Assembly: GCA_963924565.1 (NCBI GenBank)
Contig: OZ004610.1
Span: 1,178,001-1,242,000, forward strand
Length of the DNA: 64,000 bases
Source of the DNA: Ascidiella aspersa
Lineage: Eukaryota
Reading direction: 5' to 3'
Part shown: positions 56,436-64,000 of the stretch, piece after piece
Position numbering within the stretch: position 1 is the stretch's first letter
How the letters are laid out: every line of letters begins with the position of its first letter
Program-made: the position numbers and the translations under genes
Notes under the pieces: model-generated
What the model saw: only the letters and a program-made list of their open reading frames with translations
Databases searched by the model: none
What the model was told of the DNA's origin: nothing

Positions 56436-59029
56436 GCTTGGGCCCGAGCCGATCAGCGGTTGATATACCGGCCAAACACAAATAGATTTTCATAAATACG
56501 AATAAATTCTTTTCTAACTTTAACATTTTTTTAAAATTTTGTGTCCCAATGTAGCATATAGCCTACTTTTACGTCACTATACACGTGACCATTGTCCACT
56601 GACGTGTGACCGCCGCACCTAGCGAATTGCTTTTCCGCATTTGACAATTCATTCTATTTTATACGTCTTACTGATTAGCGGCTTGAATCACCGCTCTGTT
56701 TATCGCTGTATTTCTGAGATTTGTGAATATACTCTATGAGCAACTATCTACTGAGTGGATTGTCTTTGCTTAGAGTACAAGAAGTTAAGGACAGGTATTC
56801 TAGCGGCCTGCTCCTTTGGAGTCGGATTAAGAACTTGTAAGAGACTTAGGCAGCCGTCGGCCCTCGTCTATAGGGTCAGCAGCCTTCTTATAGCTCCCAA
56901 CAACCCCTCTACGCTTCACCCAAATGCTTTGTTGAAGTGTCTTGTAAAAAAAACCTTTTGATTTTTCAGTTTGAATTGCACAAGCTTCAGGCGTTTATAT
57001 ATGACGGAGAGCGGTTATGAATCTTGTCAAATAACTTAGTTGAAATTAAGTGCATGGGCTGCCAACCTAAGTTGAACGGCTATACTTTTAATAAACCGAA
57101 CAAATTGTCGAAATGTTGGCCTTTTAGTAAGACAATTTTAAAGAGCCATGTATGCAGAGGCGTAGCGATGGTATTTGGCGCCCCTCCATGTTTAATCACA
57201 TTTTCTATTACAATAACATAATATACCTTACTTTATACGAAAAAACGGTTCAAATTGTAATACAACATTGTATTTAAGGGAAGAAGCAGCCTCATTTTGG
57301 CGCCCCTGTACCTTGGCGCCCGGGGACATATGTACCCCACATATCGCTTTGCAAGGTTTTTAAACAACGCTGTTTTACCACAAACCCTTTTAAGTGCTAC
57401 AAGTCTAAAGTTAAAACAGCTTTTCGGAAGACTGTAACGTTTAATTCCGCCGATTTTACATTACTTTGATGATACATTCCGCAATCCATAAAAATTACTT
57501 TCTTCGATGGGTTAAATGAATTATTTGGTGACGGGTTAAATGAATTATTTGGTGAATAATCATAAGCTTACGAGTTTCAATTTACTTTTATGCATCTTTG
57601 CAATCGTGAAAAAGAGAGCTTAAAGAATACCATAAGGACAGCGAATGGACCTTACGGTCATCCAGTCGAGCTGCCATAAACTATAAACAATTAGCTAAAA
57701 GCCTGATCGAAAACAACAAACTTACCGGAGAGTGCAGTTGTTCAGTAAGAACGATCTTTCCACCTTGGCACCATTCCAGCACTGACACGTTTTTCCTTTT
57801 TTCCATTTTGCAATCTGCCGAAAAAGGAATTTCATTCCGCGCTGATTAGGTCACGTGACGGCTTCAGCAGCCTTAAGCATCGACACTGTTTGTTATTTAT
57901 GTGAAAATGTAAAAGCAATGCAGTGTTTACCAATATTACTGTACTGGTACTACAAGTATATACATTGGTACCAGGCTTTAAGTTCACGTCCAGCTAAAAT
58001 CTATATGAACTTTGTTGTGCAATCTCAAGCGCATATAAGCTTCCGGTTTCTAATAAATCGTAACCTATAGTTCCTTTCCTTTAGTATGCGCCACAATTCG
58101 TTGTACTTTTCGTCGCCGTGACATGCATTGGCTGTCGCTTAAATCACATCACTGCAATTCGTACGCTGCTTAAACAGAAATCAGATTGCAAGACGCGTTT
58201 TTTTTTCTAGCTTGCCAAGAAAGCTAGTCGTGGAATTTACAGCTAATCAAATAACATCCAGCTGCCAACCCCGTAGTTTGAAACACTTACAACCGGTTTA
58301 CTATGCCGGTTCAGGTTCGGTTTGGATTCAAAGGTTTATTGGAATTCCATGGGTCCCGCACTTTCCGTACAACCGTTTTAACTAACTTTGTTGAAAACGA
58401 ATAAAAAAAATTCGAAACGTTCAAAATGTTACCTACTGCTATATGAGCTTTCATATTTATTCAATGTCTAACTAAAACCTTCAGCCATCATCTTAAGATT
58501 TATTCCAAACTTTCACTAAATGCTTCCTACTTCTTTATGGGCTTTGATATCCAGTGCGGTTGGCTGGAAGCGTCAACGAAAATGCTTTGTAAATTAGCCG
58601 GTTCAAGTTCGCTTCGGGTCCAAGGATTTATTTGGAATCCGGTTCGAAGTAACTTAAAAGTTCCGGTTTGGATACACTTGACTATGAGGTGCGTTTCACC
58701 TCAAATACGGGTCAATAAATATAGAGAATAGCCGAATTATTGAATTGTAACTTATATTTAATTAAAGTTTTGTGACGTATTCAAAACAGGCAGCTCGTTA
58801 TTGAAATATCTAAAAAAAAACAAAAAAACTTTTTATTAAATGAATAGTCATTTTCACTTAAATTGCGAAAATGGCATAACTTGACCCTGTATTGACAGAT
58901 GCGGGTTGAAGCGAAGTCGCCCAAAACCGGTTCATAAAGTTCGGTTTTGGTTTTAATTCGACTCCCTGGTTTTAAATAGACTCGTTTACAAATGAATCAA
59001 TTCAGTTTTGTCTAAAATGTAGTAAAATT

Positions 59030-59305
59030 ATCGAAGTCCATACAGAAGTAGTTATCATTTTGAAGATTTCGAATTTCTCTTTATTTATTTTCAGCATATT
59101 TTTGAATAGATGTATTTCAACGTTCACAAAATGATACCTACTTCTGATGGACTTTGATATCCATTCTACGTCTTACTACACCCTCCAGCTATAAGTCCAA
59201 CTACAACCTCAAATTATTATCGAAGATTTATTTGTAACGTTTAAAATGTTACCTACTTCTGTATGGGCTTTTGATATTCATTCTTACTGCAACCTCCAGC
59301 TATTA
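59030..59305. repeat. dispersed repeat family (cctacttctgtatgggctttgatatt...ctacgtcttactacaacctccagccat); copies at ~27190-27315, 41835-41985, 48545-48620 and 58430-58550
   Basis: At least five recognisable copies, some tandem or head-to-head. Confidence 0.8.
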
Positions 59306-59949
59306 TGTGCCAAGGCAAAAATGTACTTTTATATTTTGCACAGAATGCATGATGCTCGCGATCCCATTGTCACTTCATGCTTAACTATTCCGCCACAATC
59401 AGTTTATGTCCCGTGCCTGAAGCCCATGTTAATCGCTGCAAGTTTGATGCTCGATGCTCGTTGGACACTTATTGTGAAAAGGACACCAGACGGTTCATCC
59501 TTGCCCAGAGAACATCCAAAAAAAAACCTAAAATGTAGTGACGTCATCGTTTTTGCTCTTTGTAGCTGTCGACTCCTATTTAGTTTTCTATTGAATTTTC
59601 TTTTAAAATTAAACAATATTAACCATAGATAATTACGTAGAAACATTGGGGATTTAGTTGTATTCAAGTTAACTATTTTATTTTAGGTTATTTTTTTTAA
59701 TTTTAGCAATAATACCAGAAGATAATTTTCTAGAAACATTGCGGATTTGTTTTTATTCAAAATCAATTCTGAATAGTTGCATTGTTTTTCATCAACACTT
59801 TCTGATGTTTTTATGGAATTATTTTGACCTTCGTCCAGGGAAAAACATAATGGTGGTTGGTTTATTTCTTAGATAAATGTCCCAACAAACCACAATCTAC
59901 CCTCTCTACCCCAACGCGTAAGCATAAATATAAACATTATCACAAGTTT

Positions 59950-60033
59950 ATGTTTCTGGTTGTTTTATTGATGATCACACGAATAAACAACGGATCCATG
60001 AAGATACTTCGTTGTTACTTCTCGGTGATTCAT
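59950..60033 (-). other. 3' non-coding exon of the peptide gene with AATAAA (59969-59964)
   Basis: tcttttcag acceptor at 60035-60034; sequence conserved in a second copy at 63900-63971. Confidence 0.7.
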
Positions 60034-60195
60034 CTGAAAAGATATAAAAGTTTAATGAATTATAAATAGACCCCCCCCCCACCCAAAAAAAGTTCGTTTA
60101 GTATCAATAAGTTTTGTAATACTGGTAAGACGAAATTAGTTTCTAAAAAACATTGCAAAGCGAAAAGTATTTTTTTAAATAAAACTAACCTTAAT

Positions 60196-60248
60196 TTATT
60201 CTTGCTCGTCTTGGTTTGTATCGAGCTCTTGTATTTCGGAGTTTTGAG
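60196..60248 (-). CDS. same precursor, coding exon 2: acidic propiece AQNSEIQELDTNQDEQE*
   Basis: ctttctttctag acceptor, phase 1 compatible, TAA at 60198-60196; donor AAG|gttagt after 60190. Confidence 0.82.
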
Positions 60249-60367
60249 CTAGAAAGAAAGTCAAATTGTTTAGCATGATTTTTTTAATTGAAATAAAGCA
60301 TATATTATGAAAACTACGCTCATAAAATTACACAATTAGGTTCTTGAAGAACTTCATTCAAACCTAC

Positions 60368-60560
60368 CTTCTTGATCATAAACTCCATGCGGATGGCAAT
60401 AAGGAATTGAATACTTGCATTTGCAATAATTACCACCGTGCTTGCATTGGCAAAAAAAACCAATGGATTTGAGAACCTTGACTTTTTTCCAGTAACCCTC
60501 GCTCTGATCAACTAGAAGTAGGAGGCCAAGTAGAAGCGCCATCATAACAAACTTGTTCAT
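60368..60560 (-). CDS. secreted cationic Cys-rich peptide precursor (putative antimicrobial peptide), coding exon 1: MNKFVMMALLLGLLLLVDQSEG-YWKKVKVLKSIGFFCQCKHGGNYCKCKYSIPYCHPHGVYDQE
   Basis: Acceptor tttttcag directly before the ATG; hydrophobic signal peptide ending SEG; donor AAG|gtaggt, phase 1. Confidence 0.85.
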
Positions 60561-60643
60561 CTGAAAAACATACAAGAATTTGCGCAAAATATTTGAATGA
60601 TATATGCTAGAACCACTAACATATGTTGATTACTGACACTTAC

Positions 60644-60680
60644 CTTGTTGTTTCAACTTGTCAGTTGTGTCAATCCAATA
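60644..60680 (-). other. 5' non-coding exon of the peptide gene (start approximate)
   Basis: AAG|gtaagt donor at 60643; 83-nt intron ends at the ATG. Confidence 0.65.
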
Positions 60681-60839
60681 TAAAACTGTGTGCCAACTGA
60701 GATATTTCAGCTCAATTTAAAGGTTTTAAACAATAAGCTGACTTTTGGTTCATGGAAATATTTGGAGAATCGTGGTTATTGTTTGATTAAACGCAGAAAA
60801 TTAACTGGGAATATTGCGGATTTTTTAAAAAATAAAATT

Positions 60840-61580
60840 ACCTTTGAATAGTTGAATTATTTTATATTATTCCTTTCTTTGAAATCTAAACAAAAATATC
60901 AGCGGATTATTTCTGAGAAACATTTCGGATTTGTTTTTATTCAAAGTCAATTTCAAATATGTGCAAATTTAACATTATTTTCTTTCTTTATATTGAACAT
61001 TAAATCAGCAGATAATTTCATTGAAACAAACCCGCAAACTTTCTATTTAAAGTTGATTTTGAATAAAGACAAATCCGTAATGTTTCTCAGTAATAATCCG
61101 CCGAAATTTTTGCTCAGATTTCAAAAAAAGGAAATAATGTAAAATAATGCAGCTATTCAAAATTAATTTTGAATAAAACAAATCCGTAATGTTTCTCAGA
61201 AATAATCCGCTGATATTTTTGTTTAGATTTCAAAGAAAAAAAAATGCAACTATTCAAAGTTGACTTTGAATAAAAATAAATCCGCAACGTTTCTTAGTAA
61301 ATTATCTGCTGATATTTTTGTTTAGATTTCAAAGAAAGAAAAAATGGAACTATTCAAAGTTGACTTTGAATAAAAGCAAATCCGCAACGTTTCAAGTAAA
61401 CTATTCTTATATTACTGTTGAGATTTCAAAGAAGGAAAATAATATAAAAGATTGCAACAATTCAAACTAGACTTTGAAAAACAAAAACAAACTCACAATT
61501 ATGCTAATATTATTGTTTAGATTTCAAAGAATAAAAATAATTTAAAACAGTGCAATTATTCAAAGTCCACTTTGAATACC
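60840..61580. repeat. foldback-type satellite of ~100-bp units (core palindrome tattcaaagttgactttgaata); orientation flips near 61025; more units at 59620-59790
   Basis: About 5-6 tandem units at 61040-61580 and reverse-complement units at 60840-61020 and 59620-59790. Confidence 0.85.
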
Positions 61581-61959
61581 CACTTTCAATTCCGCCATGT
61601 TTTTCTCTTTTTAATTAAATTCCATATTAAACGCAAAACAACGCAAGAAAAACGATAGAATTTACAGTTAACTAACATGATAAAACAAAAGTTCGTTCTA
61701 CAAAAAATATTCATGAAAGGGATGATCCAATCACGTAACGATGACCTTTGTGATTTGAATAGTTTTGCAGGATGACGTCATCACTTCCTTAGACACGTGG
61801 TTGCTGACGTCATAAAACGCGTTAATTAAATGCTCACAAAACAGAGGGAAAGTGGTTGTTAGAAGTTTGCTGAAGCTTTCATATTCTGAGCTGCCAGAAA
61901 GAGAGATTTAGTATGAGCATTTGACCATCAATGAATATACTGTTGCTGTGAGGCATTAT

Positions 61960-62106
61960 ATCAATTTTAAAGAGGGTTCTTCTGACAAATATTTATTCTG
62001 TTGCAAGGTTACAAGTTAATTTGCCCTGAAGAAGATTACCTGGATAGGTTATCGAAACGTCGTCACAGAATAAATATTTGTCTGAAGAACCCTGTTTAAA
62101 ATTGAT
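61960..62106 (+). other. inverted repeat (~42-bp arms) enclosing a hammerhead-ribozyme-like core of Penelope-element style
   Basis: CUGAAGA (62026-62032), stem GAUUACCU/AGGUUAUC, GAAAC (62054-62058), then GUC; related degenerate copy at 56015-56055. Confidence 0.5.
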
Positions 62107-63889
62107 TTTACTATCCTTCCTTCTTTTGGTGAAACTGGCCTGTTGTGCTTTCCCAAAGGGCAAAAATGACTTTAATCTCGGTTCTTTTCTTTTCTGCATG
62201 ATTTGAATCAAGGTGCGTTTTACAAAGCTTGGCTTCGTGACCGCGTTGGAAAGAGTTTAGATGCAAACCAGACCCTGCGGCAAACCCTCTCCTTCGTGTT
62301 CGATTACGAAGTGGTTGTTACCAGTGTGTTGAACTGTTTTTTTACTCTGGGCCTAGATTATACATCTTAATCTCTAGTTCCTATTTGCCCTAACACCCTA
62401 ATAACCCTAGACGTTATGTACCTTAAGCCCTAGAAACCTATTCTTATCCTTGGTGAACCCTTCGTTATCTTATTTTCATTTTATAAAAACACTTACAGTA
62501 CCTTACGCATTTGGGTATCTGAAAAACACCTGAAAGTCAAAGATTAAGGATTTGTTAGCTCCTGTAAAAAAAGGTTTTCCAAAATCACTGACTTCTTTGC
62601 TGACTTAACAGTCCAAACCAATCAAATATTCGGCAAATACAAAAGTGCAAACTGCCTCAAATGTTTCAATTTAGGGTTGTTTGGTTTTAGTTGGTTTAAT
62701 TTTTGTGGTTATGTATCAGACAAGTAAATAACACAAGACACAATTCTTTCGTGGGGGAAAAATTCCATCGTCTCATCGCATCGTGGTTATATTGCAATTT
62801 CTTAATGCAAAAAAAAACAGAATCAAAGAAGAAATGAAATCTCCAAGTAAATTAAGGGGTTTTATTTGGTTCTCTAAACTGGAGTTTTTGCACAAAGCGA
62901 GTTCGATAGAATAAAGTTCGAAGCCACTTTGGTCAACAACTTATAGTAGGAATGCAAATTGCCACAAACACACATGCTTGCCGACACTGTTCTGTTGGTC
63001 CAGAGCGGTGCAGTGTGCTTACAAGAATAAAGTGCAGTTTTAGGTGAAAAAGCTCTGAACCAACCCAAACACTTCACTACTTTCAAAATAAAAAATAAAA
63101 AGTGCAAAACATCTATAATAATAGAAGGCGTGGCTGTCACGCGAATAAGTTGATTGCGAATTTCGAATACAAGTTTTAAACTTCCAATACATTTAGAACA
63201 AGTTTGCAATAAACAACGTTAACTTCAGCCGTGGAGTAATATGGCAAAGTCCTGCAAAAATTGAACTTTAAAGAAGCTTTTGACCAAACGAGAGCTTCGG
63301 CAGGGAGACATCTCGTGTTTGGGTGAATTTATAAAAGTAAAAATTTGTTTTTAACTCGAAGCGCTCCTATCATAAAGCATTATAAAGTTATCCGTTCAGA
63401 TTCCAGTGGTTTTCAAGCGGTTGCCTTGCCTGGCATTTTATTGCTGCATATTCACGGGGGAAGGAAGAGAAGTAATGTGGGAATAAACTGCAAGGCAAGG
63501 CCTGGTTCTGCAACAAGCAAATCTCAATTACATCGGGCTTATCCCGATCGCAATCCGCCTGGAATTTCGCGCATAAACCTAATGCTGGTAACCGCCCTTT
63601 AAGGTAAGTTTACTTTAAAAATGAATTATATTTTTGGGAGTTTTGTGAAAATCTGTATCAGGGGTTTGCTAGGTGTTCACATTGACCGAAAGGTGAGGTG
63701 ATTTAAAAGTCTACTTTTCAATGTAAGTTGCATATTATGTTATTAAATTGACTTGTTAAATGATGGCGCTACAAGGTTCATCTTATATTTTACTTCCAGG
63801 TTTGGTTTTGTTTAAAGTCAAACTAGACAAGTTGCATTATTATTATTCATTCTCTTTTACATTTTAATAATACCAAAAGTACAATTCTA

Positions 63890-63971
63890 TTTTTTAGCTG
63901 TTTTATTGATCGGCACACGAATAAACAACGAATACACGAAGATACTTTGTTGTTGTTTCTCGTTGATTAGT
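63890..63971 (-). other. 3' non-coding exon of a paralogous peptide gene that continues beyond the window
   Basis: Colinear and highly similar to 59961-60067, including acceptor, AATAAA (63907-63902) and adjacent intron sequence (aatgaattataaat). Confidence 0.7.
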
Positions 63972-64000
63972 CTGAAACAAAATAAATGAATTATAAATTA

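Follow-up and report, generated by a model that had tools for sequence, protein, structure and literature searches.

The 64,000-nucleotide window analyzed here comes from the ascidian Ascidiella aspersa (contig OZ004610.1, positions 1,178,001 to 1,242,000), and the flagged stretch within it, 59950-60680, holds a gene of four exons that is transcribed and encodes a small, secreted and strongly cationic peptide with five cysteines. The original prediction, made from the letters and their open reading frames, had drawn the gene as four exons on the minus strand, and both the minus-strand reading and the translations of the exons match its coordinates exactly. Exons 2 and 3 together encode a precursor of 81 residues, in which a 22-residue signal peptide ending in DQSEG is followed by a 36-residue peptide of charge +7 (7 Lys, 3 His, 4 Tyr, 5 Cys and 1 Trp, with no Asp or Glu), a Gly, and a tail of 22 residues that includes 8 Asp/Glu and has a charge of -8. 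The residue counts given beforehand were thus right, and the proposed layout, i.e., signal, cationic peptide and acidic tail, is real.

A stranded RNA sequencing (RNA-seq) dataset from the same species (run X4), of which about 6% was read, gave evidence of transcription. Its reads fell on one strand only, with depth beginning in the bin 60664-60699, stopping near 59944, and dropping to zero in all three introns. Eleven reads crossed from exon 1 to exon 2 (60560/60644) and four from exon 3 to exon 4 (60033/60190), with three further loose ends extending into exon 4, so that two of the three junctions named in advance (60643/60561 and 60189/60034) were seen, and the third, between exons 2 and 3 (60367/60249), gave no reads at the reporting threshold in the part of the run that was read. 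Nor did this run report a joint from exon 2 to exon 4, in which exon 3 would be skipped and a sixth Cys added via the frame ...SSWIRCLFV. Because exon 1, the signal-coding region, exon 3 and exon 4 are near-identical among the paralogues described below, many junction reads may stem from sister genes, and three of seven exon-3 reads bore the Thr-to-Met variant of paralogues in a tandem array; part of the junction evidence therefore speaks for the family and not for this gene. Reads specific to this copy were confined to 60376-60447, at a depth of 1-2, and its mature-coding region was free of differences in two DNA runs (X1 and X2) from two samples of the species. What takes the gene beyond chance is the combination of stranded junctions and empty introns with an exon structure, intron phase and splice sites that are repeated in about 12 paralogues. 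The coordinates of all features are collected in Table 1.

Table 1. Features of the five-Cys gene and of its surroundings, in positions of the window.
Feature	Position	Strand	Remarks
TATA-like TTTAAAT	60715..60721	-	about 30 nt upstream of the onset of RNA coverage; putative function
Exon 1, 5' untranslated region (UTR) without ATG	60644..60700	-	5' end approximate; transcription start near 60690; 89-95% identity among paralogues
Intron 1, GT..AG	60561..60643	-	zero RNA depth in bin 60592-60627
Exon 2	60560-60368	-	ATG at 60560 is the first base of the exon; 64 codons + 1 nt
Signal peptide, 22 codons, ends DQSEG, h-region VMMALLLGLLLLV	60495..60560	-	nucleotides 91-98% identical between paralogues
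Predicted mature peptide, 36 codons, charge +7, C-x-C-x6-C-x-C-x6-C	60387..60494	-	from translation and 8-paralogue alignment
Gly59, start of acidic tail (VYDQE) and first base of split codon	60368..60386	-	phase-1 donor AAG/GT, kept in all intact paralogues
Intron 2, GT..AG	60249..60367	-	RNA depth 0 in 60268-60339
Exon 3: remainder of acidic tail AQNSEIQELDTNQDEQE, TAA at 60198-60196, 6 nt of 3' UTR	60190..60248	-	phase-1 join; tail kept family-wide
Intron 3, GT..AG, inside 3' UTR	60034..60189	-	4 junction reads + 3 loose ends
Exon 4, 3' UTR, AATAAA at 59968-59963	59946..60033	-	98-99% identity in every paralogue; RNA depth ends near 59944
Satellite array, 97-110-bp units, both orientations	60793..61578	.	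directly upstream of promoter
Satellite copies of about 100 bp	59578..59803	.	downstream of gene
Exon 4 of neighboring paralogue L011	63891..63968	-	coding exon just past window end

A further run (X3), labeled as another organism, was identical to the window between 59963 and 60711 in exon 1, the signal-coding region, exon 3, exon 4 and part of intron 2. It joined the signal to other mature sequences and had no coverage over the mature region of this gene; it may derive from the same species or a very closely related one, and differ through presence/absence variation or simply through low depth.

The gene is not a singleton: it belongs to a lineage-specific family with about 16 loci. When the window's own 308.6-Mb assembly (G000) was searched, exon 2 gave 17 matches, and DNA searches with the 65 nt coding for the signal and with exon 4 found 16 places each. 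Four groups of loci lie on C4, the contig of the window. Two genes stand head to head at 362-366 kb, a tandem array occupies 406-426 kb and a further pair 551-556 kb, and the gene described here, at 1238 kb, has a His-rich neighbor at 1242-1243.5 kb. Outside C4, there is one locus on C2, two on C3 and one on C5. The intact copies have nearly the same signal peptide, the phase-1 donor AAG/GTAAAG, and an acidic tail of related sequence carried by a separate exon, and the TATA-like element opens a promoter-proximal block that an alignment of the trio showed to be kept in the three closest paralogues. Behind this shared frame the mature peptides are of several types. The five-Cys type comprises this gene, L002, L003, L005, L006, L008 and L009, together with the truncated L007, and the remainder are His/Tyr/Cys-rich (L011), short and Pro-rich (L012, L013), Lys-rich with Cys (L010), or endowed with six Cys (L014, L018). 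Damage is visible in four loci or more: the Cys motif has been lost from L004, a stop codon comes too early in L007, the acceptor of L008 is mutated, and L019 is without a start codon.

Conservation along the gene is a mosaic. Identity among paralogues is 98-99% in exon 4, 91-98% in the signal-coding region and 89-95% in exon 1, and it is 22-85% in the mature part and 28-87% in the introns (up to 96% within the tandem array). In the tandem array, five-Cys and Pro-rich genes are 96% identical in intron 3 and 98% in exon 3, and just 31% in the mature segment, a pattern that suggests that the mature segment of L012 and L013 was replaced as a cassette. In these two genes (C4:413563-414248 and 425441-426121 of G000, respectively), the family signal and the acidic tail enclose only a short Pro-rich peptide without charge. 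By the Nei-Gojobori method, the ratio of non-synonymous to synonymous substitution (dN/dS) in the mature part was 4.5-4.8 for L005/L006 versus L009, on small numbers (1 synonymous versus 16-17 non-synonymous changes); within the closest trio it was 0.5-0.9. Between subgroups, the signal had diverged at synonymous sites about tenfold less than the mature part (0.07-0.13 as against 0.6-0.7), which points to the signal being constrained or homogenized at the nucleotide level. Exon 4, near-invariant in paralogues whose introns share just 28-81% identity and conserved far above the level of neutral sequence, folds into an imperfect stem-loop of 62 nt (minimum free energy -17.7 kcal/mol, z = -2.06). 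At its very beginning stands an ATG, from which a reading frame of 22 codons runs to the poly(A) signal.

A constant frame around a mature part that diverges fast or is replaced is, by analogy, the signature of an effector arsenal, as known from conotoxins, frog skin peptides, and the mussel MgCRP-I and myticalins. The two mussel groups are described as hypervariable peptide families with conserved pre-pro regions (MgCRP-I, PMC4558851; myticalins, PMC5577615). Like these arsenals, the frog dermaseptin superfamily and the conotoxins, the family described here has conserved signal and pro regions, a variable mature part, clustered loci and signs of diversifying selection. It differs from them in that the sequences are unrelated, the 3' UTR exon is also near-invariant, and a family-specific satellite is present at nearly every locus examined.

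The claim of an odd five-Cys scaffold stood up well to comparison among paralogues, since its frame is invariant in the eight that were aligned. Residues G12, C15, C17, K18, C24, C26, I30, P31 and C33 are the same in all eight, whose consensus frame is G-x2-C-x-C-K-x3(5)-C-x-C-x3-I-P-x(1-2)-C, and the turn between the CxC pairs always contains Gly or His. Seven of the eight have the spacing C-x-C-x4-C-x-C, and the gene in the window reaches x6 through a two-residue insertion in the turn. As neither the signal nor the tail contains Cys, the odd number of cysteines is a conserved property of the secreted product. For the mature region, AlphaFold2 run with the eight paralogues gave a mean predicted local distance difference test (pLDDT) score of 54, with no helix and with strands at 13-17 and 24-28, i.e., at the two CxC motifs, as the only secondary structure. 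The two-disulphide beta-hairpin that had been proposed is consequently plausible as a model, in that strands are predicted on both CxC motifs, and the prediction is of low confidence.

Functionally, the nearest class to such a model would be the beta-hairpin antimicrobial peptides (AMPs), e.g., protegrin, tachyplesin, arenicin and gomesin, with which the peptide shares a short, strongly cationic C-x-C...C-x-C frame. In that class, an antiparallel hairpin is closed by C1-C4 and C2-C3 bonds. The x4 spacing between the CxC pairs is that of protegrin-1, and nothing points to common descent. The precursors are unrelated, as there is neither a cathelin domain nor a Pfam match here, and the ascidian peptide, unlike the beta-hairpin AMPs, has an additional N-terminal arm of 14 residues and an invariant fifth Cys after I-P-x.

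How the precursor might be processed can be read to some extent from its sequence. Based on the h-region and on the small residues at -3 (Ser) and -1 (Gly), we infer that the signal is cleaved after Gly22. At the other end of the cationic peptide, the Gly that had been put forward as an amidation donor is indeed present, but the H-G before the acidic part occurs in L001, L002 and L003 only, i.e., in the three closest copies, and is not kept in the tandem-array subfamily. A rival boundary is kept there equally well: a Tyr stands directly before D-Q/E-E in L001, L002 and L003, and also in L014. Given that this Tyr is as conserved in the trio as the Gly, cleavage after Tyr is as well supported as a Gly-directed amidation. 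Precedents exist in plicatamide and morulin Pm, in which a C-terminal decarboxylated unit of dehydro-3,4-dihydroxyphenylalanine (DOPA) or dehydro-trihydroxyphenylalanine (TOPA) is derived from Tyr (PMC3039461). The calculated masses are 4287.08 Da for residues 23-58 as an amide with two disulphides, 8572.14 Da for the corresponding covalent homodimer, and 4607.21 Da for a peptide with its end at Tyr61. There are no dibasic sites in the precursor, and those of the Ciona LCAMP family are likewise without dibasic cleavage sites (PMC7387483).

Sequence searches used single exons as queries, mainly exon 2, and bore out the statement that the scaffold was not recognizable as a described family, in that protein, profile, Pfam, PDB and ESM Atlas searches produced no match. 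With exon 2, a word-indexed search of 5.8 billion proteins returned no candidate, Pfam nothing meaningful, the PDB sequences none, and the ESM Atlas no usable match. Recent reviews contained no ascidian peptide of the five-Cys kind. A scan with Rfam over 57000-64000 gave one sub-threshold, microRNA-like match, which lies outside the gene; this match (61967-62099, minus strand), to the plant family MIR6140 with 25 bits against a gathering threshold of 140, is almost certainly due to chance.

To our knowledge, nearly all known tunicate antimicrobial peptides are Cys-free helices, the turgencins being the sole Cys-rich ones isolated, and their gene is unknown. Of the families compared, the styelins and clavanins of Styela clava had been singled out in the original prediction on the strength of their precursor layout, and here, too, the signal is followed by a cationic peptide, a Gly and an anionic C-terminal extension. 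Styelin signal peptides end in QSEA, and the one described here ends in QSEG. The mature styelins and clavanins are Cys-free amphipathic alpha-helices, whereas the peptide in the window is rich in Cys. Membership in that family is not supported on this defining trait, the peptide having five Cys, a hydrophobic moment (muH) of 0.19 over residues 1-14 and predicted strands, and general sequence searches brought up no relative of any kind. The genome itself resembles that of a vanabin-bearing ascidian rather than obviously that of a Styela.

The nearest published relative in layout, and by eye also in its signal peptide, is the LCAMP family of Ciona intestinalis (KH.S921.1, KH.S921.3 and others), which was defined by a conserved 23-residue signal consensus (Ohtsuka & Inagaki 2020, PMC7387483); one of its members, KH.S921.1, was lethal to E. 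coli, S. aureus and P. aeruginosa at concentrations under 3.1 uM (PMC7387483). The published ascidian antimicrobial precursors have the order signal, cationic, anionic without dibasic cleavage sites (PMC7387483). In the LCAMPs, as here, a signal, a cationic region and a short acidic C-terminal region follow one another in a small precursor, and the genes form a family whose members keep the signal and diverge in the mature part. In a comparison by eye, with one gap, 8 of the 15 defined positions of the Ciona consensus are identical in the signal described here (MNK..LL..GL..L) and five are conservative, and the acidic tails have a loose QN.E..(E/D)LD pattern in common. The LCAMP peptides are Cys-free, linear, cationic amphipathic helices, unlike the five-Cys peptide, and we treat these similarities as a lead and not as demonstrated homology. 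Since the Ciona screen removed every candidate containing Cys (PMC7387483), Cys-rich relatives would have gone unreported.

Turgencins A and B of Synoicum turgens, according to their authors the first Cys-rich ascidian antimicrobial peptides, are Lys-rich, amidated and 35-36 residues long, and their genes are unknown (PMC7024374). Their frame, C-x3-C-x4-C-x7/8-C-x2-C-x3-C, is not matched by the peptide in the window with its five Cys and CxC pairs. Two of its paralogues, L014 (C4:365140-365872) and L018 (C2:7710663-7711373, both in G000), come nearer with C-x3-C-x3/4-C...C-x3-C-x3-C, a likeness judged by eye and limited to the Cys frame; L014 is without net positive charge. L014 is predicted to form a helix-loop-helix (pLDDT 82.5), and a fold search with this model gave only non-significant matches to helical hairpins, the best being VBP-8, a plant alpha-hairpinin. 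Neither L014 nor L018 found more than weak twin-CX3C matches among the PDB sequences. Reads of an L014-like copy with one residue changed were present in run X4. A different precedent is offered by halocidin and dicynthaurin, haemocyte peptides of Halocynthia aurantium that form a covalent dimer through an unpaired Cys (PMC10817596). They are helical and have a single Cys, and they provide a model for the role proposed below for the fifth Cys.

What could such a peptide do? We lean toward a host-defense peptide that is stored with a neutralizing acidic propiece and acts on microbial membranes by means of a disulphide-stabilized cationic hairpin, a reading we hold to be somewhat better than evenly supported. 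After cleavage of the signal, the -8 acidic tail would keep the peptide of about 36 residues and charge +7 inactive for as long as it stays attached. Once it has gone, the central C-x-C...C-x-C would fold into a two-disulphide beta-hairpin that attacks microbial membranes, and the invariant fifth Cys would stay free for an inter-chain bond, i.e., dimerization, or for another modification.

Several observations weigh against a defense peptide of this kind. Residues 1-14 are only weakly amphipathic (muH at 100 degrees, 0.19), the structure prediction is of low confidence (AlphaFold2 pLDDT 54), and the Gly is without conservation outside the trio. The family is not uniformly AMP-like, as L012 and L013 have a net charge of about -1 and the six-Cys L014 a net charge of 0. 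The likeness to the Ciona signal comes from inspection by eye of signal peptides, which are sequences of low complexity. A hidden Markov model (HMM) profile of 12 paralogues had no match at E <= 0.001 among 1.84 billion representative proteins, a search in which a relative sharing only the 22-residue signal could not reach significance, so that absence from other ascidians is not implied.

The alternatives differ in how much of this they would explain. Blood-cell (morula-cell) or tunic peptides that act by chemistry and not by membrane attack are unlikely, yet they are the main alternative, favored by the composition of the peptide, rich in Tyr, Lys, His and Cys, and by that of the neighboring L011, in which His, Tyr and Cys are extremely abundant. 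Such peptides would have modified residues (DOPA/TOPA, bromo-Trp, cysteinyl-DOPA) in place of Tyr, Trp, Lys, His and Cys, or would use these side chains to bind metals. They would serve in wound sealing, tunic cross-linking, redox reactions or metal handling, as has been suggested for morulin Pm, ferreascidin, plicatamide and the tunichromes. The boundary Tyr of L001, L002, L003 and L014 would be a possible site of a decarboxylated dehydro-DOPA/TOPA (PMC3039461), and the vanabin genes in the genome and the non-cationic family members are also in keeping with these roles. On the other hand, the tandem-array subfamily is without the boundary Tyr, and as peptides of this sort can be antimicrobial too, the idea overlaps with a host-defense role.

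The conserved signal, the hypervariable Cys-rich mature domain, dN/dS above 1 in some pairs and the non-cationic members would also be expected of peptides secreted for signaling or recognition, such as a hormone, a pheromone, or a factor in gamete recognition or allorecognition, made hypervariable by co-evolution with receptors. We consider this improbable: the precursor has no dibasic sites, a strongly cationic peptide is coupled to a charge-neutralizing acidic propiece, and radically different mature folds in one family fit an effector arsenal better than they fit ligands of a single receptor class. Similarly doubtful are toxins or deterrents directed at eukaryotes such as predators, fouling organisms or competitors. 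Their attraction is the conotoxin-like architecture, with constant signal and UTRs around a hypervariable Cys-rich part, in a sessile host reliant on chemical defense, but ascidians are without a venom apparatus, and the Pfam, profile and PDB searches turned up nothing akin to a toxin family. A decaying or non-functional duplicate, its reading frame persisting by chance, is very hard to credit despite the four or more broken family loci (L004, L007, L008 and L019) and the low depth of gene-specific RNA, as the gene has an intact reading frame, canonical splice sites, all of the invariant scaffold residues, gene-specific reads, and the same sequence in two individuals sequenced independently (X1 and X2).

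The family also invites a broader proposal, which we offer tentatively and consider possible rather than probable. The family would represent an undescribed superfamily of tunicate defense peptides, in which a fixed frame of family-specific upstream satellite, 5' UTR exon, signal, acidic propiece and ultra-conserved 3' UTR exon holds an exchangeable, fast-evolving mature segment of at least four unrelated peptide types (a five-Cys hairpin, a six-Cys helical hairpin with a turgencin-like frame, a His-rich type and a Pro-rich type), and the five-Cys members would be the first beta-hairpin AMPs of tunicates, active as disulphide-linked dimers. If true, this would give access at the level of the gene to the Cys-rich defense peptides of ascidians and would place several folds behind one signal peptide. 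It would also mean that the closest invertebrate relatives of vertebrates share the strategy of a constant frame and a hypervariable effector with cone snails, frogs and mussels, and the peptides might serve as salt-adapted templates.

The satellite that flanks the gene (Table 1) is, to a striking degree, a property of the family, as 86 of the 87 matches to it in the whole genome are at family loci. It adjoins nearly every paralogue locus checked (the window gene, L002-L006, L008-L014, L018, L020 and L021) and lies upstream of the gene wherever the extent of the gene is known. For the L003/L020 locus, 622 kb upstream on the same contig, both family membership and the satellite were confirmed. 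Each unit contains the short palindrome TTCAAAG-N4-CTTTGAA, which we take to resemble an HMG-box/TCF-type site. The satellite could be a regulatory array that was duplicated together with the genes, or a driver of unequal crossing-over, and, together with the near-invariant 3' UTR exon, its confinement to these loci could bear on how arsenals are regulated and duplicated.

The ascidian origin of the DNA is corroborated by markers in the same genome, namely a GH6 domain (a match just above the Pfam cut-off), two Vanabin-2 genes, and a TGA that is read through in mitochondrial COI. The two Vanabin-2 matches, both above the Pfam cut-off, are 14 kb apart (G000:C3:25475213-25489114), and the presence of vanabin genes suggests a phlebobranch. 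Around the end of the window, L011 and L021 span G000:C4:1241891-1243721, the L011 peptide, with its extreme content of His, Tyr and Cys, lying behind the family signal, and a degenerate piece resembling exon 4 is found a little further along the contig, at C4:1245701-1245770.

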